A program made the position numbers and the translations under genes. A DNA stretch of 63,324 nt, filler included, from Lenisia limosa (lineage: Eukaryota; Protista; Breviatea), in NCBI GenBank assembly GCA_001655205.1. It is 8 parts of 8 records of this genome, joined end to end, with 100 filler letters (N's around TTAATTAATTAA, not from the genome) between each part and the next. Parts side by side here need not be neighbours in the genome. Positions count along the whole stretch, not along the records: positions 16,416 to 19,444 come from LPNZ01006892.1; positions 19,545 to 20,829 come from LPNZ01002825.1; 6 more parts are not named here. One strand, given 5' to 3'. This document shows positions 2,950 to 20,185 of the stretch, piece by piece. Every line of letters begins with the position of its first letter. Position 1 is the first letter of the stretch. Below the pieces are notes generated by a model. That model was not told the origin of the DNA and did not search any database. It saw nothing but the letters and a program-made list of their open reading frames with translations.

Positions 2950-5900
2950 CCATTGCGACCCCAAGGGCCTCTCTCGCACTTCGGGTCAATGCACCTACAG
3001 ATGGGTCGTAGTCATGACCCTAGAAAATTACTTAAGTGTGCTACCAAATGAATGTACTTTATTCATTGTAAATTAATTGGTGTGTGATACCCCAACGTAA
3101 AACAGTGAAGTAAACTACACGTTAGACTAAAGCCAACCTTCGGAGTAGACGCACTGCCATGACATGATACTCGGAGGAGTACTTGTAGAATCCTATGGTA
3201 TTCGAGTTGATTGGCTGAGTAGTAGTTTTGATAGGTTTCAAAACTAAAAATTGAGAAAATGGGAAACGTAGCAGTAGCTTTGAAGACACTTTATAATTGC
3301 CTTACAGTTGTTTCATTGCTGTGGTAAACATTGACAAAACAATGGACAGATTGTCTAGGAATGTAAGATTTATCAATACCGAAAACGGAGACCCACAGGA
3401 TAATGGCAATTCAACAAAATAGCCTGCTTCATCGAAAGAACCGAAAGAAAAGGACACGTCATCCAGTTGGTCATGTATTTCAGATTCTGACAGGCGGGCA
3501 ACAGGTTTGCGGCCCCTTGAGCGAATTGTCTAGAATGCAATAAATCATGTTATCTGCAGAGGACTTAGCTAGTTTTATCACCAGACATATCATAATATTC
3601 AGCAAGAAGGATTGCGGGGTGATAAGGGGACAGCTTTCAAGATCTGGTTGCTCACGAGATTTTTTTGCTGATTTAGTCTTTGTCGAGTTACTGCAGCAGT
3701 TTCTCTTGTGCTGAGACGGAATGATGTGTCCTCTAAAAAGATGGTCAAATAGGTATTTGAAGCTCAACCAACTTGTCGGCACTATGAAAGGTTCAATCGT
3801 CTTCCCTGTCGCGTGATTGACCCACATGCTGCGCTGCGTAGCCTTTCGGAAGTGATCTACACAGATAATTAACCCAATTAAATAAAACAACTTCAGATAT
3901 ACTTGGTCGAAAGAGCACTTTCCTCACTTTTGAAGAGTTTCTCTTTTTCAGCTTGTAATTCAACACTACTTTCATCAGAGTGTGACTGAGCATCAGCTAA
4001 ACCAGGGACCACCCAGGGATGAATAGCGCCAGTGTGAGGGTCAATTCCCGCCTAAAGTAATAAAAACACACCCATAAAGAACTGTACCGCAAAGTGTTCC
4101 AATACCCTCAAACTGTGGCAGTATTCCAGCTTTTTGTAAGTTTCTTGACTGATGGTAATTTGGAGACACAGCACGGCCCTCCGCAGCCAGTCATGTTAAC
4201 CTAAATCCGTGTCATTGAGAATATTGATTTCAAAGATGTATTTGCTGTAACTATAACAGAAGTAAACAACAAAGCTAGGATCGTTCTACGTTATCCAACC
4301 CTGCAAACCAGTTCTTGAAGAGGGTGCAGCAACTCATCATTAACCACAACGAATGTTTCTCTTTCGAAAAATGCCCCTTCCAGCATTGATTGGTCTTTCG
4401 GCTCAGGCGGTGGTGTATTGTCAGTGGCGTATGGTGATTCCACTGGAGATCGCACGCGAGGGACTACAGGGCTCTCTAAATCATGAGTCACAACGTTATT
4501 GTCTGTTATGAAGCTTTTCCCACGAGTAGAAATTCAGTTCGGTTGGAAAAGGGGCATTTCAGCCTTTGGAAACAAAATTAGCTTCAACCCACCGCAAACG
4601 ACAGAAGGTTGATTCCCAAGTAGGTTAGTGCTTGGTCTACTTTTCTCTTCAGGTGACGGGTCAACAACAGCCAAATCTGGTAAATGTACAACCTTTGCGT
4701 GGCTACTAATATGCCCTCTTTTGGCAAACTGGTCCTCCTTTATCATTAGAGAGTGATATAATAATAAACATCATATTATTTAACACACCTCAGAGTAACC
4801 ATGAGAATTCAGGATTTTCTCCAAATCTTCAGTCAAAGGCTAAAAGGGTGAAAGGTGAAATAATACTTATGAGTGTAATACTGTTGTGACATCAGCAATC
4901 CTCCAATGTAAGAATGTCAGGTTGGTCTTGAAATTCCTTCAAACAAAAATGTATGCACAATTCGTGAGGAGTTTCATCTTCCCTCAAATATTTTTTCGTT
5001 ATTTTTTTGGTATTTTAACCATACTGTTATCCTTCTGTTTTACCATACCATAAAAAGAAGGGAAGGGTCAACTTTAGATTGACTGAGACTATCAAAAAAA
5101 GGGGTTCCATCGACCCGAAATTGAGGACTTTCTTCATAAGGCAGGTTGCACATCTAAAAAGTCACAAAAATCCACTAGTGTCACTCCACATACGGAAAGG
5201 TATATTTGAAAAATGTATTTGAATTCAACCTACATAAACATATCTAATATGTAATTAAAATCAATTATTGAATAGTTCCTAATAAAATATGATATTTACA
5301 ATTTTTCTGTATCCTTTAGAGGCTTACATCTTTAGCACCATATGCTTGAAGAAATGCCGCTCTGATATTGCTAAGGTTCTTTTGACACGACACTGAAGAC
5401 GCTGGTGTGTTATTTTTTAAGGGGGAAAATGTGAAGTGGAAGCTTCAAAGCAAACCAAGGTAGAATGATGATCTCAGCGATTCCTTGTTTCTTTTGAATG
5501 GGAGGGAAAGGCTGCTGATATGTGCACCTAGACATGTCATAACGAAATAGCTTATTCTGTTACTTTTTTTCTTACGTAGTAAAACATCGAGACACTTGTA
5601 ATGAGGAAGACGCGTGGCTAATTTCTGGGTATTTCTACTTGTGGAGGAAATAAGGCTCCTGAGCTCATCTCTGGACTGAAGCGGGATAAAATCAAAAAAA
5701 AACAACATTCAGTACCCACATTATGAGAAGTGACCTGATTAAATTGTGTACAAAACTTACCAGTAAGGAAACAGGCCTCTTAGTGGTATCAAAACACTTT
5801 AACGGAGTGCCCATTGCCATTTGTACTTCAGACTAAAGAATAAGCTAAATGTAGAAGGGATGAGAAGAGGAATTACATTCAAAGAAACCACATACATTTT

Positions 5901-7150: not shown

Positions 7151-10100
7151 TGAAAAGAAACTGGAATGATTCTCTGACACCATAGGTTTTGGGGCACTAA
7201 AAGTAAAAACTAGAACAGGCTCAGACAACTAATAACCGGTCCGGAGCCCCTTTCCCATTTTGATACAATCCATACCGTCCCCCAACTTACTCCGAATTAA
7301 TTTGACTCTCAAGATTGGGAAATGGAATTCTAAAGTTATCATGTGAATAAGATAGTGTTACCTGTCGTTGGGGTGCTTAGTAGGCGACTTGAGGTGTGAA
7401 ACAGAACGCTAAAAAAATTTAGAGATAAATAAGAAGTAATTTGAAGCAGTGAAGTGAACAGAAGTGAAGAAGATAAGAAACAAACTTTTAAGGGGCTTTG
7501 GGAAACCGAACGCTGATGTGGTGTCACCTTAGGAGTAAAAATTACTTGATAAGAGGCTTAAAAGAAACATGATGCTTTCAATCTCAAACAACCAAAATAT
7601 CCAACCCCAACCCCACCATCTGAACAGGGGAGACCATTTGAGGACGGGGGGACACAATAGTGGGTGGCTCAACTGGTACGTTAAAAGTATTGGAAGCAAG
7701 CAGTTTTCATATAGACCACATTATCAAAAAAAAAAAATACCTGATGGTGGAGGGGATTGAGGGGAAGGAGTTCTATCGAGCTCGTTTGGCCTGAAAGATA
7801 ACACAATACCAATAGCTAAAGAAAATATATTACAAATAATATAATGAAACTCATACGGTTTGGGCTGAGCTTCAAGTTTCTCTGGCACGTCAGAAGGTTG
7901 CATGACTGCTTCTATATTTTTGAGTTGAAGAATTAATTCCACACCCCCTAAAAAGCTGGGGGGTATAACCTCTCGGTGTGTAAAATAATTGTCTTTTGAC
8001 TACCTGGTGCTTGAGGTGAGGAAAGGTCCAATTGTGGAGATTGAAAATCCGAGGATGCTAAACTGGGTGGTCTAAAATCGTCAAATCTTAAATAACAACT
8101 TCAAGAAAAAATCCACTTACGTGGGAGATTCCAAAAACAGATTCACCCTGGTATCGCCGTATTCTTCTGCGTTACATGCCGGAAAACCATCATCACTAGT
8201 TGGATCGACTTTGATGGATTTCTGTTTGAACGGTGATGCATCTTCTTCAGGCTTCGCTTTTCTAAATGGCCATCAAAACAAAAAAAAATAAACAAAAAAC
8301 TCTCTCCTGTTTTTCAATACTCAATATGTTGTCACAGAAAAATAATGCGTACTGGAACATTGACGCAATAGATCTCTGTTTTTGAAATGGCTGTTTTTGG
8401 TTATTTTTTGAAGCCACCATCTTGGCAGGCAGAAAACAAGATAATACAGCTGGAATCAATAATATCACATCATGGAGGATGGGAGAGGAGAGGAGAAACT
8501 TTTACTTGAAAATCAAATCTTCTTAATCAACTCAACACACAAATTTGCAAATTTGACGACAAAACTCAATGTTGTGAGAGTGGAAGCAGTGGAAGCAGTG
8601 GAAGGGGGCTTAAAAAGAGATCAAAAAAATAATGGGAAACAAGCGGGTAGTTGCCAGTTAAAGCAACGTGAACACAAAATTGCGCAAGAATTGCACCATT
8701 AGATCAGTAGTTTGTCTAGGAAGCTAGTAAGTGTGAATAAGCTTGGTCTTAGTGTCATAGTTCAAAATTCCACAGTGCCCGAGCTCTCCTTTTCTATCCA
8801 AGGACTGATACAGTGTCTTCAAGGTGTCCGTATTCCTCAAAGTTGGTACAAAGCAAATATTACGGCACATTCTTTTCAACAATTGCTACTTTGGGGATCT
8901 CTTCATATTATATATCATTTTCTCAAAGAGGCCAGTATTCCTGCTTGACATCAAACATTGGCTCATGTTTTAGGATAGTCCTCTGAAATAGAAGAATGTA
9001 CAGTCATCGCACACTCAACCGTAAGAGGACAGCTGTTTACCTCCAAAGATCACTGGAGGAATATCTTCTTTTTTTTATTTCTTTTTTTTTATCGTTTAGA
9101 TAATTGGTTCGAAGAGAGGATCTGGCAAGAACAAAATGCAAACTCTCCCCAAAAGAAAATTGTTGGTTTTGTGTGGTTGCTGTATGCGAAGTGAAAACTG
9201 TTTAGAGCAGTATATTATTTACATCAATCCTCCATTCTACTATCTTTGATCGCAGCTTCTAACAAAACACGCCAGGAAGCACCTTACAACAAAGATGAAA
9301 GCCCATTGCACTTTCACCTGGCCCGTCATGCAGGGAAAGACACCACTGGAAACATTGGTGCTCCGAACATTCATGTTAGCTCTTTTGCCAAATTGACAGG
9401 ACTGCAACTTGCGTTTCAATAACACTAATGCCATTTTAGAGAGACTATGGAACAACTGCTTCCACCACTTTTAAACAACCCTCTGATGAGGATAGGGTAG
9501 GGGCTAAGTGAGATTGGTTGCTTTTTTTTCTGTGTTCGCCATTATTCCATTCAGAAAGAAGTGGTGAAGACTTTCGGAAAGAAGCCTATTCTCCGGAAAA
9601 GCGCGACAACTGATCGTGATAAGGTGAGTGGGAGTCGACTGTTTTCATTATTTCATTTCATTTTGCGCATACCCCGCCCTCAAATTCTAATACACAGTCA
9701 ATGGACCCACGAATGGCAGTCATGCAAACCATGGTTGAAACAGAGGAGGAGACTAAAATGTAAGATAGCATACCAATAACCTCGCTGTGCTGAGATTTAA
9801 TTCACCTATAGGCGGTTAATGACCACTACGAACTCAGACTTTTTGGAGTGCAATGAAGATGCGAAAAGGGAGGTGTTCAAGCCAATTGCTACCACAACGG
9901 TGTGCAAAATTACCCTCAAAATTACCCTCACAAAATACATAAATATTTGTTTAATATGGTTTGAGATTAATACGAAGCTACTTGCAAGCTTTGTGAATGA
10001 AGTAAATACACAGGACTTCAGAGTGTACTTTCGTAAACAAGTCAGTTGAAGAATATCTGAACATTTCACTCTTCTCATTTTCCAGATTCATTTTCCTCAA

Positions 10101-11720
10101 GAAGCAGTGAAAGAAGAGGCTCGCTTGACAAAGACTTTTGGAAAGAAGTCATCTCTGGCTGCTGCCACTTATGATAAAAATGTGAGCTCTTCCAATGCTT
10201 CCTCCCAATACTTACTTTGTAGCATGGTGTGTTGCCAGTTTCTCATGGCCTCATGGGTGTACCAGGATCAACAGGTGGGGGGGGGGGGNNNNNNNNNNNN
10301 NNNNNNNNNNNNNNNNNNNNNNNNNNNNNNNNNNNNNNNNNNNNNNNNNNNNNNNNNNNNNNNNNNNNNNNNTTTTTTCCCCTCTCCTTTTTTGGATAAA
10401 GAACATAATGTGTTGTTTTAATGAACCCAGGTGGCGACACCCATCACAAGAGAGCTGGTTTCTCAGCTCAGGTACATTCGAGGGATATGGTTAATAAGTG
10501 TATTGTTTTTGCTGATGAGTAATTTTAGGTGATGTATTTATGTATTATAAGGCAGTTTTTGTGGTTAAGCTTCAATTTTGGATTGTTAAAGAAGTTAAAC
10601 TGTATTAAATAACAAGAAACAGGGGTCTATTCAAGTGCAATCCACTTGTAAATTATATGAGGGGTGCAGGCCATTCAATGACGTCCTTACCGATAATACC
10701 GAAAACAGAACCTGGAACGGTCCAAAGCGAGTGGACAGCAGACTAAAAAATGAATTCAGGCCTCGAATGACTCTTTCCTTCGATCCCCACCTTTTTGCTG
10801 GACTTTGAGGGCACACTCAATTCAACAGAATCGCTCGCGCGCAGGTCCCATGCCTGAGGGGTAAATATGGTCTGTGATAATCGAATACTAATCCACCTCA
10901 CCCCCCAATAACAATCCCACCAACCTTAACAACCCCATCCTGTGAGCCGGCAACAATCCAGCCGCCATCCCTCGTAGTCGTTACAGACGTAATCGCCTGA
11001 ATGCGTTATATAGTTATCTTTCAGGAATAGCAGAATTAAATATCACAACTTATGAGAGAAACCCACAGTAGTATTACAGTATAATGTTGACAAACGTACC
11101 GAGTTACAATGCTCCCAGGCCAAAACGGGGCCAAGAGATGATGGGGCTCTCGTGTCGAAAAGGAGAATTCGTCCGCTATTTGCGCCTGCGACAACCTTGG
11201 AAAGTTAAAAAATAAAACCGTCCGAAACTCGCTAATCATCAAGTTAACCAATAGCAAGCAAATCGATATTATACATGTGTTTTTGGAATCCAATACACTT
11301 GCTACTAATTGAAAGCACTGTTATGATATTTGAGCATACAAGGCCATGTCTTGGGGGTGCAACAATGCTCAAAAGTCCACCATCAGCCTTGGCAGAACCA
11401 GTATACAAAGTCGTCTAGAGAGTAACTCAAGCACTACTATCACAAATGAAGACACAATAAATATTGTGAAATCTCAATCCTTCTAGTACACTGCTGAATC
11501 CTTTTCCATAATGTCTTTTTAAGACTGACCAATTTTTACATTTTTTTTAACATAGTCAATTGTTGATATCGATATTTCTTTACTTTATAAACTCAACTAT
11601 ACCCAAACAATTCCACTCAAACATTTGTACTTGGAGCTTGAAGATCAAAGATGAATAGGCAGTCGCCTTGTGGGTCACATGACTTACTTGCAACAGCGAT
11701 CTGAGAACCATTAAATTATT

Positions 11721-12099
11721 TTGAGAAACCGTGTAACTTATGATTTTTTGGGAACTTCACCATTTTTACTTTGGAAATAANNNNNNNNNNCCTTTGGGCC
11801 TTTGTTTTACAAGGTGTGGGGTACAGGGGAGAGTATTATTACTATTTGTATGCTGGGGAGGCACACAGATAGTTGTTTGCACAAAGTTATAAGGCAAATA
11901 CAATTCAATATCTCTTCTAAGCGTGATGGTGTGGAAGGATTTGGCGAGACACAACCTTATTTTTTTTTTATGTAAAGCTTGTAGCTATACATATCAATAT
12001 ATATATCATATATGCTGCTGCGCAGAAACCGTGTAACTGTTGAGAAACCGTGTAACTTATGATTTTTTGGGAACTTCACCATTTTTACTTTGGAAATAA
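11721..12099. repeat. 60-bp direct repeat (11721-11780 and 12040-12099)
   Basis: TTGAGAAACCGTGTAACTTATGATTTTTTGGGAACTTCACCATTTTTACTTTGGAAATAA occurs twice. The first copy abuts an N gap, so it may be an assembly duplication. Confidence 0.85.
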
Positions 12100-12909
12100 C
12101 GATTTTCCTCTAAAAACTGCCATGATACAACACAGGACTACTTCACTGACAACTCTTTGAGGTAAACTCGTCACAGCTGAAAGAAAAATATTATATTTCA
12201 ACAAAGTTACGGAGACTTTTTCTTTTTCTTTCTTATTTTCTCAGTTCTTTCAGTGGTAGGGATAAGCACTCCTCCTCTAGTCACTTTCGTATTACTTGCA
12301 CGATCAGGCTTTAGCTCTTCAAGCGACGCAATAACCTAATAAATTAGCATTAAATCAGATACCTCTGTTCTTTATTCTTCAAACTAATCATGTAGGTAAG
12401 CTAGGGAGACTTGCAAATAAAAACGAAAGGCCATATCCACATAAGGTTATTCGCATAATAAAATTGTTAACAGAGCGTGATTACGAAGACATGTGATTAA
12501 TAAACCATTCAAACCTGGCCAGGTAAAAATGATCACCACTCGCTCTCCTTTTTCCAAAACGAAGAAACGAACTTGTTTCATCACCGTATCTGTAGCTGGC
12601 CCCACATTGAGAGAAAACTTTACTGCGGATTCAATCACCTCCCGGTGATTGTCATCATCAACAATTACTCTTGAAATGAGAGGGAGCTGCTGAAAAATAT
12701 TCTCATTTCTCAAAGTGACAGTTGCAAGAGAAGAGGCTACACCTTGCAAGAAACTTTTTGTAAAATCATCCAGAAGCTTTGAGCCGGTGTTTTTACCATT
12801 CTAAAGGAGTTAGTCTTACCAATATGGTCACAATGACAACAAATATGCCATGTTTTGCTGAGTTGAATTGGAAAATAACTCTTTTGGATTCATTTAAAGG
12901 CACCCAATT

Positions 12910-13009
12910 NNNNNNNNNNNNNNNNNNNNNNNNNNNNNNNNNNNNNNNNNNNNTTAATTAATTAANNNNNNNNNNNNNNNNNNNNNNNNNNNNNNNNNNN
13001 NNNNNNNNN
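12910..13009. other. Artificial scaffold-joining spacer (44N-TTAATTAATTAA-44N). The 12-mer is at 12954-12965 and recurs at 16360-16371, 19489-19500, 20874-20885, 25305-25316, 49532-49543 and 61827-61838
   Basis: The identical 12-mer, which has stops in all six frames, is centred in 100-nt N blocks seven times. Confidence 0.97.
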
Positions 13010-14600
13010 GCATGTTGTGTTGTGTTATTAATTATGTAGAACGTAAATGGGAATAATAAGTTATTTATTATGTACAACGTGGGTGGTAATATTGTGTTAT
13101 ATGCCAAATGCACCATAAACTATTCACCTGTTTTCACCAATATAAGGTCACACACTTGGATCTTGAAAACTACAGAATCGAGGCTGAATTGTAAGCTGGG
13201 GGGGGGGGGGNNNNNNNNNNNNNNNNNNNNNNNNNNNNNNNNNNNNNNNNNNNNNNNNNNNNNNNNNNNNNNNNNNNNNNNNNNNNNNNNNNNNNNNNNN
13301 NNNNNNNNNNNNNNNNNNNNNNNNNNNNNNNNNNNNNNNNNNNNNNNNNNNNNNNNNNNNNNNNNNNNNNNNNNNNNNNNNNNNNNNNNNNNNNNNNNNN
13401 NNNNNAAATATTCCAATTTAACTCCTCCCAGGGAAGGCGAAACATTTGCACTAGGCAAGCACCCTCAGGGAACCGAGATCAAAGCCATTACCTACTCCAA
13501 CATGCAGGTTTGTGAAGTTTATCAGTTCTATTATTATAGTAATATATCGGATATGATATACTTTTTTTATCATTTTGTCCATAAAAATACCATCCCACCA
13601 CTTTTCATACTCTTCATGTTGGAGTTGTACTTACTAGTCTGATATACGACCTCAGAAAAATGGGGATTGTTTCAGGAAAACGTCAGTAGCTTCCAAAATT
13701 GATCTGTTATTTTTTTTTTCTTTTTTTTTTGAAAAACACTAATTTTGTCATTTTTTTGTGAATTAATGCTCAAATACCACCCCATGTTTAGATGAGCCAG
13801 ATATAGAGATAGATTTAGAAATTGGTCAAGACTGGTCATAGTCAGATATTGCCATAGTGATACCTTAGCATATACTTTGATAATGCAGATGCAGAGTTCG
13901 ATATCTCACCGATTTCAGATTTTCTCAGAAGAGCACGAGGATGTAATTCCTCTACGCTGCGGGGAGAGGAACCCTGAAGGTCGAGCCCCCGCTGAGATCT
14001 TTGTGATTGTTGATATCTAAACCGGATTAGGCTCTTTTTGGCCGCTTATTGCACAAATGTTTGAGTTTTGAGATGATGTTGAGCAAGAACATATATATGG
14101 TTTCCTTCTGATTTAGATTATTATTTATTGTTATCTGTGTTTCTTCGAGGTAGGTCTTTGAGGGGTACTTCCTAAACGGAATGCAAACGGAACGGACCTG
14201 CTTAATAATATTGAGTGGGGACATACACAACAAGCACGTCCTAAGTGGAGATTTATCGGTAATGGAATTTATAGTGTTGTGATGCACCTATACCTTGAAC
14301 TGAATGAAACTTCAATACTGAATGTCTGAACAATTATCTGAATGTCTGAGTAATCAATAATTCATTCATATTACATCTGCATATCTGCATCACATTGACC
14401 TTACAACATTACAACTGAATTAACAGTGTAATAACCATCAACATAATAACAAAGGGAGAAAAAAAAAAGAGGAAAAGCCAAATATGTCACACTGATCCCC
14501 ATGTATATCTACTATAAATATTTTTATGATTTTAATTTTTGCGTTTTTGCTTGTTTTGTTTTGATATTTGTATTGTATATTTATAGAGCAGTAAGCTAAA

Positions 14601-16315
14601 ATGAAGACAATCTTTACAGCTTTGCTGATTGCCCTTTTGGCGGTTCCCTGCTTGTCTCTTCACACTTTCATCAACGAAGGCCAGAAATGGTGCCTCTCAG
14701 AAGAAGTGGGAAGCCAAAACTAGCGGCCAAACTGACTGTTTTAGATCCCCGAGAATACTCTCGTTGTTTCCAAGTTCAAGTTCTCATATGCCGACGATTC
14801 ACCGGTTGAGAGTCGCCAGATGCAGCCTACTCTTGGTAAGCAGGCTTTTAGGGCAAGAGCGGTTTGGAGTATTGGCTCACTGTTCAAGGTGTCGACGTTG
14901 TTGTCCGCGACCCGAGGGAAGAGATCATTCTCAAGCAAAAGAAGACTAAGGAAGCGCGTGTGGTACGTGTGGAGGCTTTTGATGATCATGTTCCTTCACA
15001 GCAGCGCTCTCCTTCACTCCTTCAGGCCTTTACCAGCCAAGAAGCCGGAGATCACAACATCTGCCTCCAGACTAACACCACCAGATGGTTCGGTGCTGCC
15101 CGCAGACTGGTGAGGCATTTGGGTGGAAAATCGAAGATCGTTCTTTGAGCATGATGTTTATGAGCTCTTGTAATATGCAATCAACTGTAAAAAGATGATG
15201 ATTGAAACTGCGGGGGGGGGGGGTNNNNNNNNNNNNNNNNNNNNNNNNNNNNNNNNNNNNNNNNNNNNNNNNNNNNNNNNNNNNNNNNNNNNNNNNNNNN
15301 NNNNNNNNNNNNNNNNNNNNNNNNNNTTCTACTTCCAAAACTATTTAGGAGGAGGGGAGTCAATATAGTTGAAATGATGGCTTTAAGCTTGAAAGTAATC
15401 TCGTTTGAACGAGTGTTTTAGATCATTGGAAACAATATTAATAAAATCCTGGAAATACACTGTAACTTGCGATAAGTCTTGACCAATTTGCTATAAGATT
15501 TCCCAAGGAAAATCGGTCAAGACTTCCCGGTCACCGTATATCTCTCTCTTTTACATGCACTGTTGTGGAGGCTTCACCCAACTCTTTTTTTCTCTTTCAT
15601 TTCTTCATGCTATTATCAAAGTTTCCTTTCCACCTTTATGTTGGTTCTTTTTTGTTTTGATACTAGTTTACCGTTGGGATGCGGTGTTGCATAAATTTTC
15701 CATTTTCACACCCGTAACCCCCGCAGCGTGTGGACTTTGAAGTTTCCGTCGGTTCTAACGCTATTGACTACGACAGCATTGCCAAGGCTGATGATTTGTC
15801 ATGTGGGAGGGGGTGTATATTAGAATGTCCCTCGATAAATCCTCGATAAATATCGATATTTTACCGGTCTTTATCGGGCCGTTGGGAAGCCCAATGTATA
15901 ATGATTTGTCATGTGGGGGTGAGTGTTAAGTATGGTTAAGGATGATAGTTTGTCTTGTGGAGGGCGGTGAAAGCATGACAAAGGAGGGTGATGGTTGCCA
16001 TGTGTGTGGAGGGGGGGACTTCAAAGAGAGACTTGGACTATTCTTCATCTATATTTCCTTCGTTTTCAATGCGGGAATGTGATGCGGTGCTGCAGAAGTA
16101 ACTGGCGTGGGTTTTTTTGTTTTGTTGTTTTCAACCCTCGTTTGTTGCTCCACAACAGAGTTGATTTTGGGCTTTTTTATTGTTTTAGATATCATATCTC
16201 TTGGGCTTGAATTTCTCGATAAATCTTCGATAAATATCGATATTTTACCGGTCTTTTCCGGACCGTAGGGAAGCCCTACTCATTCCCTATAGCAATCGAC
16301 CTCCGTTTCCGCCGC
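14601..16315 (+). CDS. p24/emp24/gp25L (TMED4/9-like, alpha subfamily) GOLD-domain cargo receptor, 3' end truncated
   Basis: Spliced exons read MKTIFTALLIALLAVPCLSLHTFINEGQKWCLSEE | IPENTLVVSKFKF...QPTL | GVDVVVRDPREEIILKQKKTKEARV | AFTSQEAGDHNICLQTNTTRWFGAARRL (ends 15109) | RVDFEVSVGSNAIDYDSIAKADDLS (from 15727) | SIDLRFRR. This is a signal peptide, GOLD domain and start of the coiled coil, with consistent intron phases. Confidence 0.88.
15458..15536. mobile_element. ~75-bp Tc1/mariner-like mini-MITE, copy 1 (other copies 21929-21998 and 62358-62429)
   Basis: Consensus TIR CAGTGACCGGGATAAGTCTTGACC / GGTCAAGACTTATCCCGGTCACTG around the core GATTTGCTATGTGATTTCCCAAGGA. TA flanks both ends of this copy. 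It lies in a p24 intron. Confidence 0.65.
15831..15892. mobile_element. Palindromic MITE-like family A, partial copy
   Basis: CTCGATAAATCCTCGATAAATATCGATATTTTACCGGTCTT...GAAGCCC, shared with at least seven other copies in 16.2-25.1 kb. Confidence 0.75.
16203..16276. mobile_element. Palindromic MITE-like family A copy
   Basis: GGGCTT...CTCGATAAATCTTCGATAAATATCGATATTTTACCGGTCTTTTCCGGACCGTAGGGAAGCCC in the last visible p24 intron. Confidence 0.75.
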
Positions 16316-16415
16316 NNNNNNNNNNNNNNNNNNNNNNNNNNNNNNNNNNNNNNNNNNNNTTAATTAATTAANNNNNNNNNNNNNNNNNNNNNNNNNNNNN
16401 NNNNNNNNNNNNNNN

Positions 16416-16458
16416 GCATAAAACCCGTAACTGACGGTTATACGAGACCGTTGTAAAC
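16416..16458 (+). repeat. Right arm of an attC-like palindromic inter-cassette repeat (unit 0, truncated)
   Basis: GTAAC-N7-TATAC-GAGACC-GTTGTAAAC has the same right-arm layout as units 1 and 2. Confidence 0.65.
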
Positions 16459-16480
16459 AATTTAAAACCAAATTTTACGA

Positions 16481-16936
16481 ATGAAAAAACTAAATTTATT
16501 TATCGGACTTCTGATTGGATTTATGATTTTATCTTGTTCATCTGATGATGATAATTCTAACTCAAATAATTTAATTGGAACTTGGAAGCCAATCAAGGAA
16601 GTTGATATATGTTCAACTGGAAGCGAACAAGTTTCTGAATATTCAGAATGCAGACAAACAGGTAGATTAACTTTTTCTTCAAATGAATCTATGACTGTAA
16701 CAGTATATGAAGTTGACTTGGGAGTTTGTGAGCAAATTTACAATGCTAATGGAACTTGGACTCTTAATGGAGATGACTTAACCATTACCATTGCTGGAGA
16801 AACTGACTCACCAACATTTTTTGAACTTACAAACAATACTCTGCGGATTGGTTATTATGATTCTGACCCAAATGACCCTTGTGATGGGGAAAATTTACCC
16901 TCACATTATTATACGGAATATATTAGAATTCAATAA
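16481..16936 (+). CDS. Bacteroidota lipoprotein with lipocalin-like domain
   Basis: Intronless 151-aa ORF. Signal peptide II MKKLNLFIGLLIGFMILSC followed by SSDDD, then the LIGTWK (GxW) lipocalin-like motif and GTWTLNGDDLTIT. Confidence 0.85.
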   Translation: MKKLNLFIGLLIGFMILSCSSDDDNSNSNNLIGTWKPIKEVDICSTGSEQVSEYSECRQTGRLTFSSNESMTVTVYEVDLGVCEQIYNANGTWTLNGDDLTITIAGETDSPTFFELTNNTLRIGYYDSDPNDPCDGENLPSHYYTEYIRIQ

Positions 16937-16943
16937 AAAAACT

Positions 16944-17143
16944 GTTTACAACAACGTGTATAGCTCATTGCTGGTCAGTTGCTTAACCGAAGTTAAGGCA
17001 TATTTGGAAAGTCGCCAAATTTTTAAATTTGACGATTTCCAAAAAAAAGATAAATAGTAAAATTTAAAAATCTGGCTTGTGGCTCAACCGAAAAATAATC
17101 GCTAATTTGCACGCAACGAGCCATACACAACACCGTTGTAAAC
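16944..17143 (+). repeat. 200-bp attC-like imperfect palindrome (unit 1)
   Basis: GTTTACAAC-AAC-GTGTA-TAGCTCA-TTGC ... GCAA-CGAGCCA-TACAC-AACACC-GTTGTAAAC, with internal hairpins (CTTAAC-cgaa-GTTAAG; TTGGAAAGTCG..CGATTTCCAA). It starts 7 nt after the upstream stop codon. Confidence 0.8.
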
Positions 17144-17165
17144 AATTTAAAACCAAATTTTACGA

Positions 17166-17408
17166 ATGAANNNNNNNNNNNNNNNNNNNNNNNNNNNNNN
17201 NNNNNNNNNNNNNNNNNNNNNNNNNNNNNNNNNNNNNNNNNNNNNNNNNNNNNNNNNNNNNNNNNNNNNNNNNNNNNNNNNNNNNNNNNNNNNNNNNNNN
17301 NNNNNNNNNNNNNNNATTTCCACTCAAACGGAATTAGAAAAAGTTAGCAGATTAAAGATAAATAAAAGTAATCGGAACAAAAAAACTACTACTTGCAACA
17401 CCGTATAA
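17166..17408 (+). CDS. Cassette ORF mostly hidden by an N gap; the two sides may belong to different genes
   Basis: ATGAA follows a leader identical to that of 16481. Positions 17171-17315 are N. The visible C-terminus reads into repeat unit 2. Confidence 0.4.
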   Translation: MXXXXXXXXXXXXXXXXXXXXXXXXXXXXXXXXXXXXXXXXXXXXXXXXXISTQTELEKVSRLKINKSNRNKKTTTCNTV

Positions 17409-17523
17409 AAAAAATTGCTATTTTGTGCTTAATTAAAGTGTGTTGCTTTTTTGCTTGCTTCTGATTTTCCTACGGAAAATCCTCGCGCACAAAAACGCAA
17501 CTTTCTTTATACAAAAACGTTGC
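17395..17523 (+). repeat. 129-bp attC-like imperfect palindrome (unit 2)
   Basis: GCAAC-ACC-GTATA-AAAAAAA-TTGC..TTTTGTGC ... GCACAAAA..GCAA-CTTTCTT-TATAC-AAAAAC-GTTGC, with internal hairpin TTTTCCtacGGAAAA. The next ATG is 8 nt downstream. Confidence 0.8.
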
Positions 17524-17530
17524 CCACAAT

Positions 17531-18049
17531 ATGAAAAAGACGCTATCAATAATATTAATCGTACTGACGATTGGGATTTCGAAAGCTGAAAGTTTAATTA
17601 CAGCTCAATATCCTGACAAGATTATTTACAATGGAAAAGAGTTCGATTTAAACTCAAATCCATTAGAACCATATTTTGAGAAAAATCCTGAAAATCGACC
17701 AGATATGGTATCAACAGCACTTTGGCGTGGATATGTTGGTCATTTTGAGATAATCGAAAACGAGCTATATCTAACTGATATGAAAAGACCAGTTGGTTAT
17801 AGAGATGACGATGGAAATTTTCAAGAAAAATGGGTTTCAATCTACAGAATGTATTTTCCAAGACAGGAAAAAGTAAAAATCGATTGGTTTAGTGGAATTC
17901 TGATTTTACCACACGGAAAAATGGTGCAATATGTTCATCAAGGTTACGCATCAACGTATAGTAAATACTGGCTTCTCGAAATTGAGAATGGAAAATTTAA
18001 TGAGGCTCGAAAATATAATAATAAAGAATTTGTAAAGTTCAAAAAACGT
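17531..18049 (+). CDS. Secreted Bacteroidota-type hypothetical protein, 3' truncated at gap
   Basis: Signal peptide MKKTLSIILIVLTIGISKA, then TAQYPDKIIYNGK...NPLEPYFEKNP...STALWRGYVG. Intronless; ends at the 10-N gap. Confidence 0.75.
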
Positions 18050-18085
18050 NNNNNNNNNNTACCTCATTTCCAAACTGAATGTAAA

Positions 18086-18578
18086 ATGAAAATATTTCCA
18101 ACTAACAATTATCAATTTGAACTTAAAAAAGAAAGTTCAGATGCGTTGTCTGAATTGGAAAAAAATACAATGATAACTGACTCTCTTGTTTCGGAGTGGA
18201 CTAAAAAAGCGTTTATCGGACAAGTAAACACAAACGGATTTAAAATAATCTCATCAAAACCTGGACGTGGAGCATTTTGCGTTTTAGAGGGAAAAGTTGA
18301 ATCTTATAACGGAACTCTTGAAATCAGAATTCATAAAGCCTTCAAAGTAATGTTATCACTTATCTTTTTATTCCCAATAATCGGATTTTTAATAGCATTG
18401 TTTACAAAAGAAAAAGAGATTATAATTTCTTTGATAATTCCGACTTTAATGGCTGTCGTTGTTTTTAGATTTATTTTCACGGAATTAGCATTTAGAATTA
18501 TATCAAAAAACGGACTGAATAAACTGACTGAAATAATCGGAATAACAAAACTGAAAAAAAACGAGGTACAACACCGGC
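18086..18578 (+). CDS. Bacterial two-TM membrane hypothetical protein
   Basis: MKIFPTNNY... with two hydrophobic helices (VMLSLIFLFPIIGFLIALF; IIISLIIPTLMAVVVFRFIF). It runs into the start of another repeat arm (ACAAC-ACC at ~18568). Confidence 0.7.
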
Positions 18579-18687
18579 NNNNNNNNNNNNNNNNNNNNNN
18601 NNNNNNNNNNNNNNNNNNNNNNNNNNNNNNNNNNNNNNNNNNNNNNNNNNNNNNNNNNNNNNNNNNNNNNNNNNNNNNNNNNNNNNN

Positions 18688-19436
18688 TTGGACTTTTAAT
18701 CGGATTAACAATTTTGTCCTGTTCATCAGATGACAATAACGGAACTGATGACCAAACACCTGAAGAAACGACTAAATTACTCAAAAAGATGACCTTTAGC
18801 GGAAATGGAAACTATTCCCTAACATTTTACTACAACACAAACGAGAAACTTGACCGAATAGAAAGTACTGGAACAGGTGATGATTTTATAAAACAATTTT
18901 ACTACGACAATGGCGTTTTAGACAGAGCTGAATTTCAAGATTTGAGCGGAGTTTCAGACGGTTCAGTTGAACAGTACGTTTACAACAATGGATTACTTAT
19001 AGAACGACAAGATTTTTATAATACCACTACTCTTGACGAGCGATTTCTCTATTCGTTTAACAACAGCAACATCGACAATATTCAATATGTTGGAAATGGT
19101 CAAACTACATATTCAGAAGAGTATATTTTTGAGTATGACTCAAATAATAATGTGCTTTTAAGAAAACACGATTACTTAAATACTGTCATTTCTGACCAAG
19201 AATTGACATTTACATATGACAATAAAAAAAGTCCTTTTCTGAATTTAGAACCTAACATAGTTCTAATAGATGACTTTTTCTCTTTTGTAAATAACCCAAC
19301 TTCTCAAATTTTAACCGATTTATCAAACAATTCTGTGATTTCGGAAAAAAACTATACATATACATATGATAATGATGATTATGCTATTTCAAGAACCGAT
19401 GGAACAGAAACAATTACGTATGAATATTATGAATAA
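18688..19436 (+). CDS. Bacteroidota surface lipoprotein with YD-like beta-hairpin repeats, 5' end in gap
   Basis: (I)GLLIGLTILSCSSDDNN lipobox, then repeated FYYNTNEKLDRIE / FYYDNGVLDRAE / YVYNNGLLIER / FEYDSNNNVLLRK / YTYDNDDYAISR. The stop is followed by AAACTGTT, the start of a unit-1-type arm. Confidence 0.8.
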
Positions 19437-20185
19437 AAACTGTTNNNNNNNNNNNNNNNNNNNNNNNNNNNNNNNNNNNNNNNNNNNNTTAATTAATTAA
19501 NNNNNNNNNNNNNNNNNNNNNNNNNNNNNNNNNNNNNNNNNNNNCCCCCCCCCCCCCCCACTGCCTCACTTTTATTTTTGAGTGGAAGAACCCTGAGATC
19601 GCAATAGCATGAACACGTCCGTCCCTCACCCCCCCAGGGCCCCCCGCATGGCCACTGCTGGCAAAACTCCTCGTCGCACCCCCAGAAGAATCGGCCTTTA
19701 ACTCACGTGTACTACTATATAATGTATCTTTAGACATGGTATCTCAAGCAACCATTTATTGCTTCAAATTATTGAGACAGAGTTTTTCATAGGAGTAAAA
19801 ATTCTAGATATACGCGCCGTCTTCTGCTCTATGTTGCGCGAACAACTCTATTATTACTTGAGACTGGCTTACACATATTATGTACTATCCAAGAGACTTT
19901 ACCAAAAAAAAAAAAAAAAGTAAANNNNNNNNNNNNNNNNNNNNNNNNNNNNNNNNNNNNNNNNNNNNNNNNNNNNNNNNNNNNNNNNNNNNNNNNNNNN
20001 NNNNNNNNNNNNNNNNNNNNNTCTGTTTACTATCACGTGGTTCCCCATTACAGTCTCACTCAATAACAAAATTTCTCAATATTGTCAGAGTTCTAGATTT
20101 AGAATAAAGAATGTGTATCATCACATTAAATTAACTATACTTTGCCCCTCTCCCATCATTGGTGCGAATATCGAATAAATAAGAC

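Follow-up and report, generated by a model that had tools for sequence, protein, structure and literature searches.

Positions 16416 to 19444 of the window, which is the whole stretch of DNA that was analysed (63,324 nucleotides, filler included), carry four open reading frames (ORFs), all on the same strand, and one non-coding unit, set apart by imperfect palindromes of 131-196 nt with invariant AAC/GTT ends, a covarying inner stem of 16 bp and a constant 3-versus-6 nt spacer. This arrangement raises the question of whether the palindromes delimit mobile gene cassettes and, if so, which kind of recombinase moves them; no recombinase gene is present within the window itself. Integrons are the main known bacterial machine for stockpiling and shuffling single genes, and both their definition and the searches for them rely on a pair of features, namely the IntI-specific domain of the integrase and a covariance model of the attC sites. 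Both features appear to differ in the flavobacterial system. The piece is read here, with a probability of about 0.8, as part of a chromosomal array of gene cassettes, operating in an integron-like manner but representing a distinct lineage of Flavobacteriia type. Each cassette would be a promoterless unit of about 0.5-1.2 kb closed by a hairpin-forming site.

The features of the piece are collected in Table 1. Both complete repeats recognised in the first-pass annotation are located by the covariance model R1, and the arm geometry described for them holds: AAC, 3 nt and a 16-nt left arm GTRTA...TTGC are answered by a right arm GCAA...TAYAC, 6 nt and GTT. The three partial arms listed there belong to genuine sites too, found complete in two other loci, L011 for the first and L002 for sites 3 and 4. 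An Aequorivita MAG contains a site 95% identical to site 1. A Pfam search gave no match for three of the four ORFs. All three assembly gaps of the piece are unreliable. The right flank of gap 1 corresponds to L002 from position 907 onward, where the non-coding cassette is whole (418 nt, without an ORF). At gap 2, contigs assembled from other runs join 17522 straight to 18060 and leave a loose end at 18049, past which they carry at least 243 nt of other sequence; in L002, the equivalent of 18060 follows directly after the GTTG of site 2. The ORF beginning at 18086 encodes in L002 a predicted membrane protein of 165 aa without a Pfam family. Within gap 3 lie the greater part of site 3 and, for the following ORF, the 5' leader and the initial 7 codons. 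Because the 10-N gap 2 is a false join, a 400-aa ORF at 17531-18733 that had been listed mechanically was rejected as an artefact, its reading running through two gaps.

Table 1. Features of the piece, in positions of the window
Feature	Position	Strand	Evidence
attC-like site, 3' part (right arm, 6-nt spacer, R' box GTTGTAA 16450-16456)	16416..16456	+	identical to L011 13163-13203, complete there
Cassette 1, 685 nt, from TT of one GTT to G of the next	16451..17135	+	direct-repeat spacing 685
ORF of 151 aa, Lipocalin_4 lipoprotein	16481..16936	+	PF13648; signal peptide ending LSCSS
attC-like site 1, long 196-nt subclass	16946..17141	+	R1 73.5 bits, E 5e-18; folds
5' end of cassette 1, second copy, up to gap 1	17136..17170	+	94-100% identical to 16439-16485
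Assembly gap 1, flanks not continuous	17171..17315	.	left, cassette 1 restart; right, non-coding cassette tail
Non-coding cassette tail, 17-nt tandem repeats	17316..17392	+	100% identical to L002 907-983, 4202-4278
attC-like site 2, 133 nt, GTT 17519-17521	17393..17525	+	R1 88 bits, E 5e-22; fold
Cassette ORF, 5' part, 173 codons, cut by gap 2	17531..18049	+	no Pfam family
Assembly gap 2, 10 N, false join of two different cassettes	18050..18059	.	L002; contig joints
Cassette: ORF 18086-18578 and first 13 nt of attC-like site 3 (18566-18578)	18060..18578	+	100% identical to L002 1114-1632
Assembly gap 3, collinear with L002, too short	18579..18687	.	165 nt in L002 vs 109 N
Lipoprotein ORF of 256 aa, 3' 249 codons	18688..19436	+	100% identical to L002 1798-2546; no Pfam family
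Lead-in to attC-like site 4, cut by piece end	19437..19444	+	complete site in L002, 2554-2683

As single-stranded DNA, both complete sites fold far better than shuffled sequences (z down to -6.1). Across 31 non-redundant sites the inner stem is paired at 98.4%, with compensatory changes at 12/16 pairs, and pairing falls to about 30% when the partner is slid by one column, so that the pattern greatly exceeds what chance would give. The covariation is repeated in 150 independent sites of other genomes, where compensatory changes occur at 11/16 pairs. AAC/GTT is invariant across the site sets and the loop is variable; outside AAC/GTT and a few stem positions the letters vary freely and the pairing is conserved. 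The asymmetry of the spacers, described as constant in the first pass, persists in this larger set (3 nt in 150/150 sites, 6 nt in 143/150). The surplus 3 nt lie on the R'-L' arm, with one extra base besides in 34/150 sites. Site lengths form a narrow peak at 131-134 nt, with a subclass of about 196 nt. A site would thus be laid out as an R'' box ending in YAAC, 3 nt, the 16-bp stem, a variable loop, 6 nt and an R' box starting with GTTR.

The palindromes therefore share with integron attC sites the R''/R' boxes with AAC/GTT, the L''/L' arms and the variable terminal structure. The extrahelical bases that the folded bottom strand of classical sites bears on the L'' arm are absent, no bulge being found at this position in 150 sites. 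When the class 1 attC sites of aadA2 and gcuF were folded for comparison, their bulge fell on the 3' arm, and the unpaired bases of the flavobacterial sites lie on the arm opposite to these extrahelical bases. R1 gives class 1 attC sites 4-6 bits, which is noise level, and does not detect them. The proposed break with the RYYYAAC/GTTRRRY consensus stands in part only: some R boxes depart from it, several fit, and many sister sites read GCCTAAC/GTTAGGC.

Folding energies favor the bottom over the top strand in both complete sites (-38.2 vs -31.5 and -24.4 vs -20.3 kcal/mol). A G·T wobble recurs without exception at one stem position (31/31 and 150/150 sites), and a second is present in 23/31 and 135/150 sites. 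The pair adjoining the R box is G·T in 150/150 sites, and the following pair alternates between T·G and G·T. Recombination probably uses the bottom strand as its substrate; 2-4 G·T wobbles are kept there, which become A·C mismatches on the top strand. The choice of strand is ambiguous in one way: it is in the top strand that the surplus bases fall on the 3' arm, a polarity shown by the classical bottom strand.

The behaviour of the units was followed in L011, in the array genomes and in assembled contigs of other runs compared with the piece. The end of cassette 1, TGTTTACAAC, returns as its reverse complement, GTTGTAAACA, at the start of the cassette. In L011, the 4 nt after the starting GTT complement the 4 nt before the AAC at the cassette's own end in 15/15 cassettes, and this complementarity holds for 224/270 consecutive site pairs from about 110 genomes vs 29/388 in a same-site control. 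A first site finder that demanded outer R-box pairing inside one site missed nearly all sites, which shows the outer R' letters to be those of the cassette that follows. In 14 contigs the identical 151-aa lipocalin cassette protein stands among varying neighbours. The breaks in contigs of other runs fall at GTTG: these contigs part from the piece immediately past GTTG at 16454-16456, and other cassettes come after site 1 (loose ends at 17137-17138). One cassette of the piece is missing from a run that holds its neighbours. The palindromes are real cassette boundaries, since the start of a cassette complements its own end and the lipocalin cassette has varied neighbours. The integron-like array proposed at first is thereby borne out, its units being, by their sequence, discrete circularisable cassettes with the crossover at G|TT. 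The cargo of the arrays is mostly of unassigned function, with some toxin-antitoxin and defence-like genes, and the arrays also harbour IS110-family elements and group II introns.

The same observations bear on the possibility that the palindromes are REP-like or terminator-like repeats, or a transcribed RNA motif, spread by other means and without a part in moving genes. Their location directly after stop codons and their stable hairpins, highly repeated in one genome, would suit such elements. This origin is nevertheless extremely unlikely, as a unit starts with the complement of its own end, identical units have differing neighbours with breakpoints at GTT, and the sites are restricted to one-directional arrays beginning at a recombinase gene. 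A U-tract is absent, and the conserved wobbles lie opposite to the mRNA strand, so that they would give A·C mismatches in a transcript. The Rfam covariance models, Flavo-1 included, gave no relevant match in the piece at E up to 10, and 59 kb of arrays yielded none at gathering score; the repeats, for which the first-pass annotation had envisaged this comparison, match no Rfam family.

Sites of this kind are widespread. A 20-mer taken from the loop matched at least 120 blocks; the genomes concerned represent about 110 species, almost all of them Flavobacteriaceae, and R1 detected 386 sites in 626 kb. One complete genome with such an array is NZ_CP138992.1, around 1.97 Mb. Site orientation is uniform within each locus (119/119), with a median spacing of 836 nt, and a Chryseobacterium plasmid carries the same sites as a co-oriented array. 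An assembly artefact as the source of the array was discarded, the same sites and cassettes recurring in many independent assemblies. The variant is common in marine Flavobacteriaceae, and both its sites and its recombinase are without the classical defining features. For Bacteroidetes, the IntegronFinder survey of 2022 listed In0 elements and a single complete integron (Salinibacter ruber) and named no cassette arrays. No description of arrays of this kind in Flavobacteriia was found in open-access papers and bioRxiv. The missing classical features may be the cause of surveys finding almost no integrons in the phylum. Standard attC models may miss the sites, as proposed in the first pass; the survey's silence on arrays and the noise-level scores of class 1 sites under R1 support this indirectly.

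A tyrosine recombinase is the sole protein family that recurs upstream of the arrays. Starting from the sites, it was linked to the array head in 5 loci. Starting from the protein, 4/4 genomes with downstream sequence have 6-11 same-strand sites beginning at most 700 nt past the stop codon, and no sites were found in the 10 kb upstream of the recombinase in these four. The recombinase-then-array arrangement is seen on the Chryseobacterium plasmid too, and in total the association rests on about 12 head-of-array loci, in which the recombinase gene is usually co-directional with the cassettes. The scan of Flavobacteriaceae genomes suggested in the first pass has thus yielded co-oriented arrays with the recombinase consistently at the head, by two independent routes; the lack of a linked recombinase, which would have spoken against the proposal, was not encountered.

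The enzyme combines the domains PF13495 and PF00589, with a RKHRHY catalytic set and a SAM-like core-binding domain. Its best NCBIfam matches, TIGR02249 and NF040815, are both under cutoff; for TIGR02249 the scores are 171-227 bits vs a cutoff of 265, in two separate stretches. In 8/8 aligned recombinases there is a 41-residue gap vs IntI1 at the IntI-specific domain, the additional domain near patch III, and vs VchIntIA the shortfall is 43 residues, 21 residues standing for 64. The nearest relative among plasmid proteins is IntI1, at 35% identity; in sequence and fold, archaeal XerA and IntI stand equally near to the enzyme and are its closest kin. Since it is below the TIGR02249 cutoff and without the IntI-specific domain, the array-head enzyme is, on its sequence, not a classical IntI, in agreement with the distinct tyrosine recombinase that had been postulated. 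In most cases the N-terminus is extended by about 95 residues, of which about 75 are ordered and form a new alpha/beta domain. This domain matches no Pfam family and nothing significant in the PDB by Foldseek (best E 0.07); against AlphaFold DB clusters it gave weak HARP-like and recombinase N-terminus matches, and its likeness to XPB is also weak. In locus L061 the enzyme is divergent and without the N-terminal domain. The IntI-specific domain, of about 40 residues, grips the extrahelical bases in classical integrons. The flavobacterial enzyme is without this domain and, correspondingly, its sites are without L''-arm extrahelical bases and bear a 3-nt bulge on the other arm instead.

Past the recombinase stop codon, a conserved motif ending in GTT is present in 8/9 loci compared (the exception being L036), and a motif scan found it also in L089, where no recombinase ORF adjoins it. 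This attI-like site lies 25-45 nt past the stop in most loci and about 200 nt past it in L056. Right after its GTT comes a complement to the end of the first cassette, as seen in 6/6 loci tested. As in integrons, an attI-like site beside the recombinase gene thus precedes co-oriented cassettes that are, judged by sequence, mostly promoterless. The recombinase at the head would exchange strands at or next to G|TT between folded single-stranded sites and the attI-like site, with the bottom strand serving as the folded substrate, and cassettes would thereby be excised as circles, inserted and shuffled. The N-terminal domain possibly supplies structure-specific DNA recognition, and cassettes may be expressed from a promoter in attI.

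With an enzyme as near archaeal XerA as IntI, and without the IntI domain, the cassettes might instead be Xer-dependent modules comparable to the pdif modules known from Acinetobacter plasmids, recombined as double strands at short dif-like cores in the repeats. Dif-type sites are 28-bp duplexes with two conserved 11-bp arms and a 6-bp spacer, and they flank each module. The flavobacterial sites do not form such 28-bp duplexes around their units; their 16-bp covarying stem, strand-specific wobbles and fixed bulge constrain a folded single strand and not a duplex core, around which the letters outside AAC/GTT vary freely. As each array also runs in one direction from one attI at its head, recombination of the pdif kind is very improbable.

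A further reading is an ordinary integron array, either sedentary chromosomal or CALIN, with normal attC variation, an IntI elsewhere and an Xer-like gene that adjoins it incidentally. AAC/GTT ends, R and L boxes, a variable loop, GTT crossover, co-oriented promoterless cassettes and bottom-strand preference are all classical features, several R boxes fit the consensus, and In0 elements have been reported in Bacteroidetes. The same non-IntI recombinase, however, heads the arrays, with the conserved attI after it, in independent genomes and on a plasmid. The asymmetry of the sites is on the other arm than in aadA2 and gcuF, the L'' arm being free of extrahelical bases; R1 hardly scores class 1 sites at all, and large surveys with standard tools named no arrays in the phylum. 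An ordinary integron is accordingly regarded as unlikely.

Beyond the piece itself, we lean towards the view that an unrecognised integron-type lineage resides in marine Flavobacteriaceae, in some other Bacteroidota and on at least one plasmid. Its Xer/IntI-like enzyme, devoid of the IntI-specific domain and bearing a structure-sensing N-terminal domain in its place, would recombine single-stranded hairpin sites with the unpaired bases on the opposite arm. As far as can be read from its sequences, the flavobacterial system has every functional hallmark of cassette recombination, and it extends over at least 110 species of an ecologically dominant marine family and a plasmid. If this is true, cassette recombination can do without the IntI domain, and the domain held necessary for integron recombination would be dispensable or replaceable. 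The Bacteroidota, thought to be nearly free of integrons, would be a large hidden reservoir of gene cassettes; their reported near-absence of integrons would need revision, and their cassette genes, some of them of toxin-antitoxin or defence-like type, would become accessible as a large and so far untapped pool.

Several known systems can be set beside these arrays. The archaeal integrons (Ghaly et al. 2022) likewise form a lineage outside the usual hosts, with attI immediately past the integrase gene. Their IntIs are reported to have the IntI-specific domain that is absent here, and their attC sites were found by standard tools and recombined by IntI1. Known integrons with an integrase gene co-directional to the array have the same gene orientation as the flavobacterial loci, but their integrases contain the IntI-specific domain and are found by standard profiles, whereas the flavobacterial enzymes are without it and below the TIGR02249 cutoff. 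With Xer/dif and pdif systems the likeness is in the enzyme, which resembles XerA, XerC and XerD and is without the IntI insertion; the difference is in the constraint, here a hairpin of about 130 nt with strand-specific pairing. Classical integrons (class 1, Vibrio chromosomal) are alike in organisation. In both, a tyrosine recombinase of the Xer/IntI branch heads a one-directional promoterless array, in which imperfect palindromes, composed of R boxes with AAC/GTT, an unpaired spacer, an inner L stem and a loop that varies, fold better as bottom strand, the crossover is at G|TT, and a cassette starts with the rest of its own R' box. The cargo is alike as well, mostly unassigned with toxin-antitoxin or defence-like genes, and with IS110-family elements and group II introns lodged in it. 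The literature holds the IntI-specific domain to be defining and necessary for integron integrases. In contrast, the flavobacterial enzyme is without this domain of about 35-41 residues near patch III, usually has an additional N-terminal domain and is encoded co-directionally with the cassettes, and its sites combine the absence of L''-arm extrahelical bases with a fixed 3/6 spacer whose surplus is on the R'-L' arm, a long stem of 16 bp in which G·T wobbles are invariant, and lengths that cluster narrowly at 131-134 nt.

The LPNZ01006892.1 record (positions 16416-19444) is a poorly scaffolded piece of an integron-type gene-cassette array, of a variant specific to Flavobacteriia. The array of same-strand ORFs described in the first-pass annotation was recovered as four ORFs accompanied by one non-coding unit, and both complete palindromes were found with the arm geometry ascribed to them, together with three partial ones. 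This observation is confirmed, and the interpretation attached to it, an integron-like array with non-canonical attC-like palindromes served by a distinct Bacteroidota tyrosine recombinase, is supported in its main points. Each site runs from AAC through a 3-nt spacer and a 16-nt arm to a variable middle, and on through the complementary arm and a 6-nt spacer to GTT. When folded as single-stranded DNA, both complete sites are far more stable than their shuffles, the bottom strand folding better than the top (-38.2 vs. -31.5 and -24.4 vs. -20.3 kcal/mol). The non-coding unit is a cassette of 418 nt that has no ORF and contains some eight tandem repeats of 17 nt (ACTCAAACGGAATTTCC-like); its repeats are seen at 17316-17345 and, as the cassette is present twice there, at about 760-906 and 4070-4200 of the metagenome contig L002. 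The lipoprotein signal peptides of two cassettes (16505-16554 and 18690-18739) are 78% identical in DNA, and the mature proteins are unrelated.

Features of the LPNZ01006892.1 record, including the assembly gaps
Feature	Positions	Remark
Lipocalin_4 lipoprotein ORF, 151 aa	16481-16936	
Complete palindrome	16946-17141	
Gap 1	17171-17315	
Tail of non-coding unit	17316-17392	17-nt tandem repeats
Complete palindrome	17393-17525	
Unknown protein	17531-18049	first 173 codons
Gap 2	18050-18059	10 N
Membrane protein, 165 aa	18086-18578	end lost in gap
Gap 3	18579-18687	
Lipoprotein, 256 aa	18688-19436	last 249 codons

The same DNA is present in independent assemblies, namely two contigs of one ENA metagenome (L011 and L002) and Logan contigs of four runs. 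Gap 3 is collinear with L002, where it measures 165 nt, not 109, and it conceals most of one site, a leader, and seven codons. Gap 2 is a false join: past 18049 the contigs carry at least 243 nt of different sequence, and 17522 is joined straight to 18060 in L002 and other contigs. A 400-aa ORF delivered by a mechanical scan across this gap is therefore nonexistent. Gap 1 connects a second start of the lipocalin cassette with the end part of the non-coding one, and in other runs the site ahead of the gap is followed by other cassettes. The flanks of this gap cannot be treated as continuous. All breaks fall at repeated sites, the pattern expected for an assembler facing such an array.

The palindromes are the boundaries of discrete cassettes, as had been proposed, on the evidence of covariation, complementarity of each cassette start to its own end, and mobility. 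In 31 non-redundant sites from metagenome contigs, AAC/GTT is invariant, pairing in the inner stem of the bottom strand reaches 98.4%, and 12 of its 16 pairs show compensatory changes; sliding one arm by a single column lowers the pairing to about 30%. A covariance model (R1) was built from these sites, and 150 further sites, then collected from 38 loci of other genomes, are likewise 98.4% paired, with 11 of 16 pairs compensatory. In integrons, what follows G|TT is already part of the next cassette, and the start of a cassette is the complement of its own end. Such own-end complementarity was found in 15/15 consecutive cassettes of L011 and, as a perfect 4/4 match, in 224 of the 270 consecutive site pairs of all fetched genomes, whereas the control comparison, between the two flanks of a single site, gave a match in 29 of 388 cases. 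Cassettes also occur in different contexts. The 151-aa protein recurs unchanged in 14 contigs of different sample origin, where its neighbours vary and include an IS110 transposase, a Gp49/HTH toxin-antitoxin pair, and an Imm63 gene, and the cassette at 18060-18578 is missing from one run that has its neighbours. Aligned contigs part ways just after GTTG (16454-16456 and 17137-17138).

A loop 20-mer of one site subfamily matched at least 120 eight-kilobase blocks. Those listed come from about 110 species genomes, nearly all of marine Flavobacteriaceae (Polaribacter, Winogradskyella, Aequorivita, Tenacibaculum, Maribacter, Formosa, Algibacter, and many more genera), and a few from other Bacteroidota. 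Genome records with such arrays include NZ_CP138992.1 (1.96-1.99 Mb), NZ_CP195158.1 (near 1.667 Mb), and JBHUKF010000001.1 (432-454 kb). Scanning of these blocks with a model of the repeats, along the lines suggested in the first-pass annotation, yielded uniformly oriented arrays: R1 retrieved 386 sites in 626 kb of the blocks, and an independent nhmmer scan gave 421 sites in 119 loci, with a single orientation inside every locus and a median spacing of 836 nt. Site length has a sharp peak at 131-134 nt. The window's 196-nt form represents a conserved subclass, with a 95% identical counterpart in an Aequorivita MAG. Two high-scoring sites (3-133 and 1947-2078) also occur in a 2.2-kb contig labelled as a Nanoarchaeota MAG (L022), which is most likely a misbinned Flavobacterial contig, and three IMG/VR contigs classed as viral (L144-L146) carry one to four sites each.

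The cargo includes defence-like or conflict genes (L139 15467-17655; L141 17771-18463; L004 1070-1706; L007 108-611), among them PycTM with two opposite-strand neighbours, TIR_2, a Gp49/HTH_3 toxin-antitoxin pair, and Imm63. Some arrays have group II intron reverse transcriptases and IS110-family transposases beside or inside them (L119 4383-5639; L066 6058-7407; L003 107-1087; L136 1111-2217), and both stand between cassettes in a plasmid-borne copy of the system (L147; NZ_CP041688.1 of Chryseobacterium sp. SNU WT5, 7986-16685). These insertions are reminiscent of the group IIC-attC introns and IS1111-attC elements, which target classical attC sites.

A linked recombinase, postulated at the outset, was reached from both sides. 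Clustering of all ORFs upstream of the array edges left one recurring family only, a tyrosine recombinase (PF13495 and PF00589), whose gene occurs five times in the 120 blocks listed for the sites, each time at the upstream edge of the array. From the protein side, six homologues, 47-51% identical, were looked up in genome assemblies. In two of them the contig stops just past the gene. In the other four, where it continues (Mesonia maritima, Salegentibacter chungangensis, Paucihalobacter ruber, and one ENA MAG), a series of 6-11 same-strand sites starts less than 700 nt past the stop codon; the 10 kb upstream of these four genes hold no sites, only unrelated housekeeping genes. On the Chryseobacterium plasmid, short same-strand ORFs and four R1 sites come after the gene of a 347-aa homologue. 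In Ichthyenterobacterium magnum (L061 4520-5350), the recombinase at the head of the array is devoid of the N-terminal domain, and its gene points away from the array, as the integrase gene does in classical integrons.

The enzyme is also distinct, as the annotation had supposed. Its top NCBIfam matches are TIGR02249 (integron integrase), with 171-227 bits in two separate stretches, below the cutoff of 265, and NF040815 (XerA/integron integrase), slightly below cutoff; among solved structures, XerA is the best match. When aligned to IntI1 from a real class 1 integron, all eight Flavobacterial proteins retain the catalytic R, K, H, R, H, and Y and show a 41-column gap exactly at the IntI-specific domain. 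In the alignment to VchIntIA, 21 residues take the place of 64. The IntI-specific domain is treated in the literature as the defining, necessary mark of integron integrases and has been used to select them.

Compared with IntI1, the recombinase is extended by about 95 residues at its N-terminus. The domain in this extension is confidently predicted as a small beta-beta-alpha-beta-beta-alpha-beta unit (pLDDT about 90). No Pfam family and no significant match in a PDB structure search were found for it. In AlphaFold DB clusters, it matches the N-termini of other recombinases and, weakly, HARP domains, and XPB N-terminal domains are among the non-significant PDB matches. HARP and XPB N-terminal domains bind branched or distorted DNA; the likeness is taken as no more than a lead. 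With a profile built on the domain, 1687 cluster representatives match at E ≤ 0.001, and some proteins of 570-620 aa (P0163, P0177, P0179, P0185, P0206, and P0239) bear three tandem copies.

Behind the stop codon of the recombinase, 8 of the 9 loci examined (the exception being L036) share a motif, roughly TATATTTG, 3 nt, GGATATAAC, 2-3 nt, and GTTG, at a distance of 25-45 nt in most loci and about 200 nt in L056. In all six loci for which the first site was available, the four letters past the GTT of this motif are complementary to those that precede the AAC of that site, the expected trace of insertion at an attI site through G|TT crossover. Since TATATTTG fits the Bacteroidetes -7 promoter box, TAnnTTTG, the attI-like site may also hold a putative cassette promoter. 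A motif scan was positive in L089 as well, at the array head (about 4745-4770), with no recombinase ORF adjoining and an 806-aa ORF upstream.

No Rfam family, Flavo-1 included, matches these repeats, and R1 scores class 1 attC sites at the noise level of 4-6 bits. Two true attC sites of a class 1 integron (aadA2 and gcuF), folded for comparison, show spacers of 5 and 6 nt, and in their bottom strand single bases bulge out of the 3' arm, in agreement with the extrahelical bases near L'' known from the literature. In the Flavobacterial sites, that arm is free of bulges. Of 150 sites, all have a 3' spacer of 3 nt and 143 a 5' spacer of 6 nt, so that the surplus lies on the other arm, which has a further single base in 34 of the 150. 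One G·T wobble of the stem is invariant (31/31 and 150/150) and a second frequent (23/31 and 135/150); the pair adjoining the R box is G·T in 150/150, and the next alternates between T·G and G·T. On the top strand, and likewise in the mRNA, each of these wobbles turns into an A·C mismatch, which argues that selection acts on the folded bottom strand of the DNA and not on an RNA element of the sense transcript. We infer that an enzyme without the domain gripping extrahelical bases and sites without such bases would form a coherent, matched pair.

According to the IntegronFinder 2.0 survey, earlier work had seen only In0 elements in Bacteroidetes; the survey added one complete integron, of Salinibacter ruber. 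Reviews list Bacteroidota among integron phyla without further detail, and another paper counts them among clades previously without integrons; no cassette arrays or array-linked recombinase in Flavobacteriia were found described in open-access papers and bioRxiv. The system appears to work like an integron. As the two features missing from it, the IntI-specific domain and the extrahelical bases of the L'' arm, belong to the current definition of the family, it is regarded as a variant and not as a classical integron.
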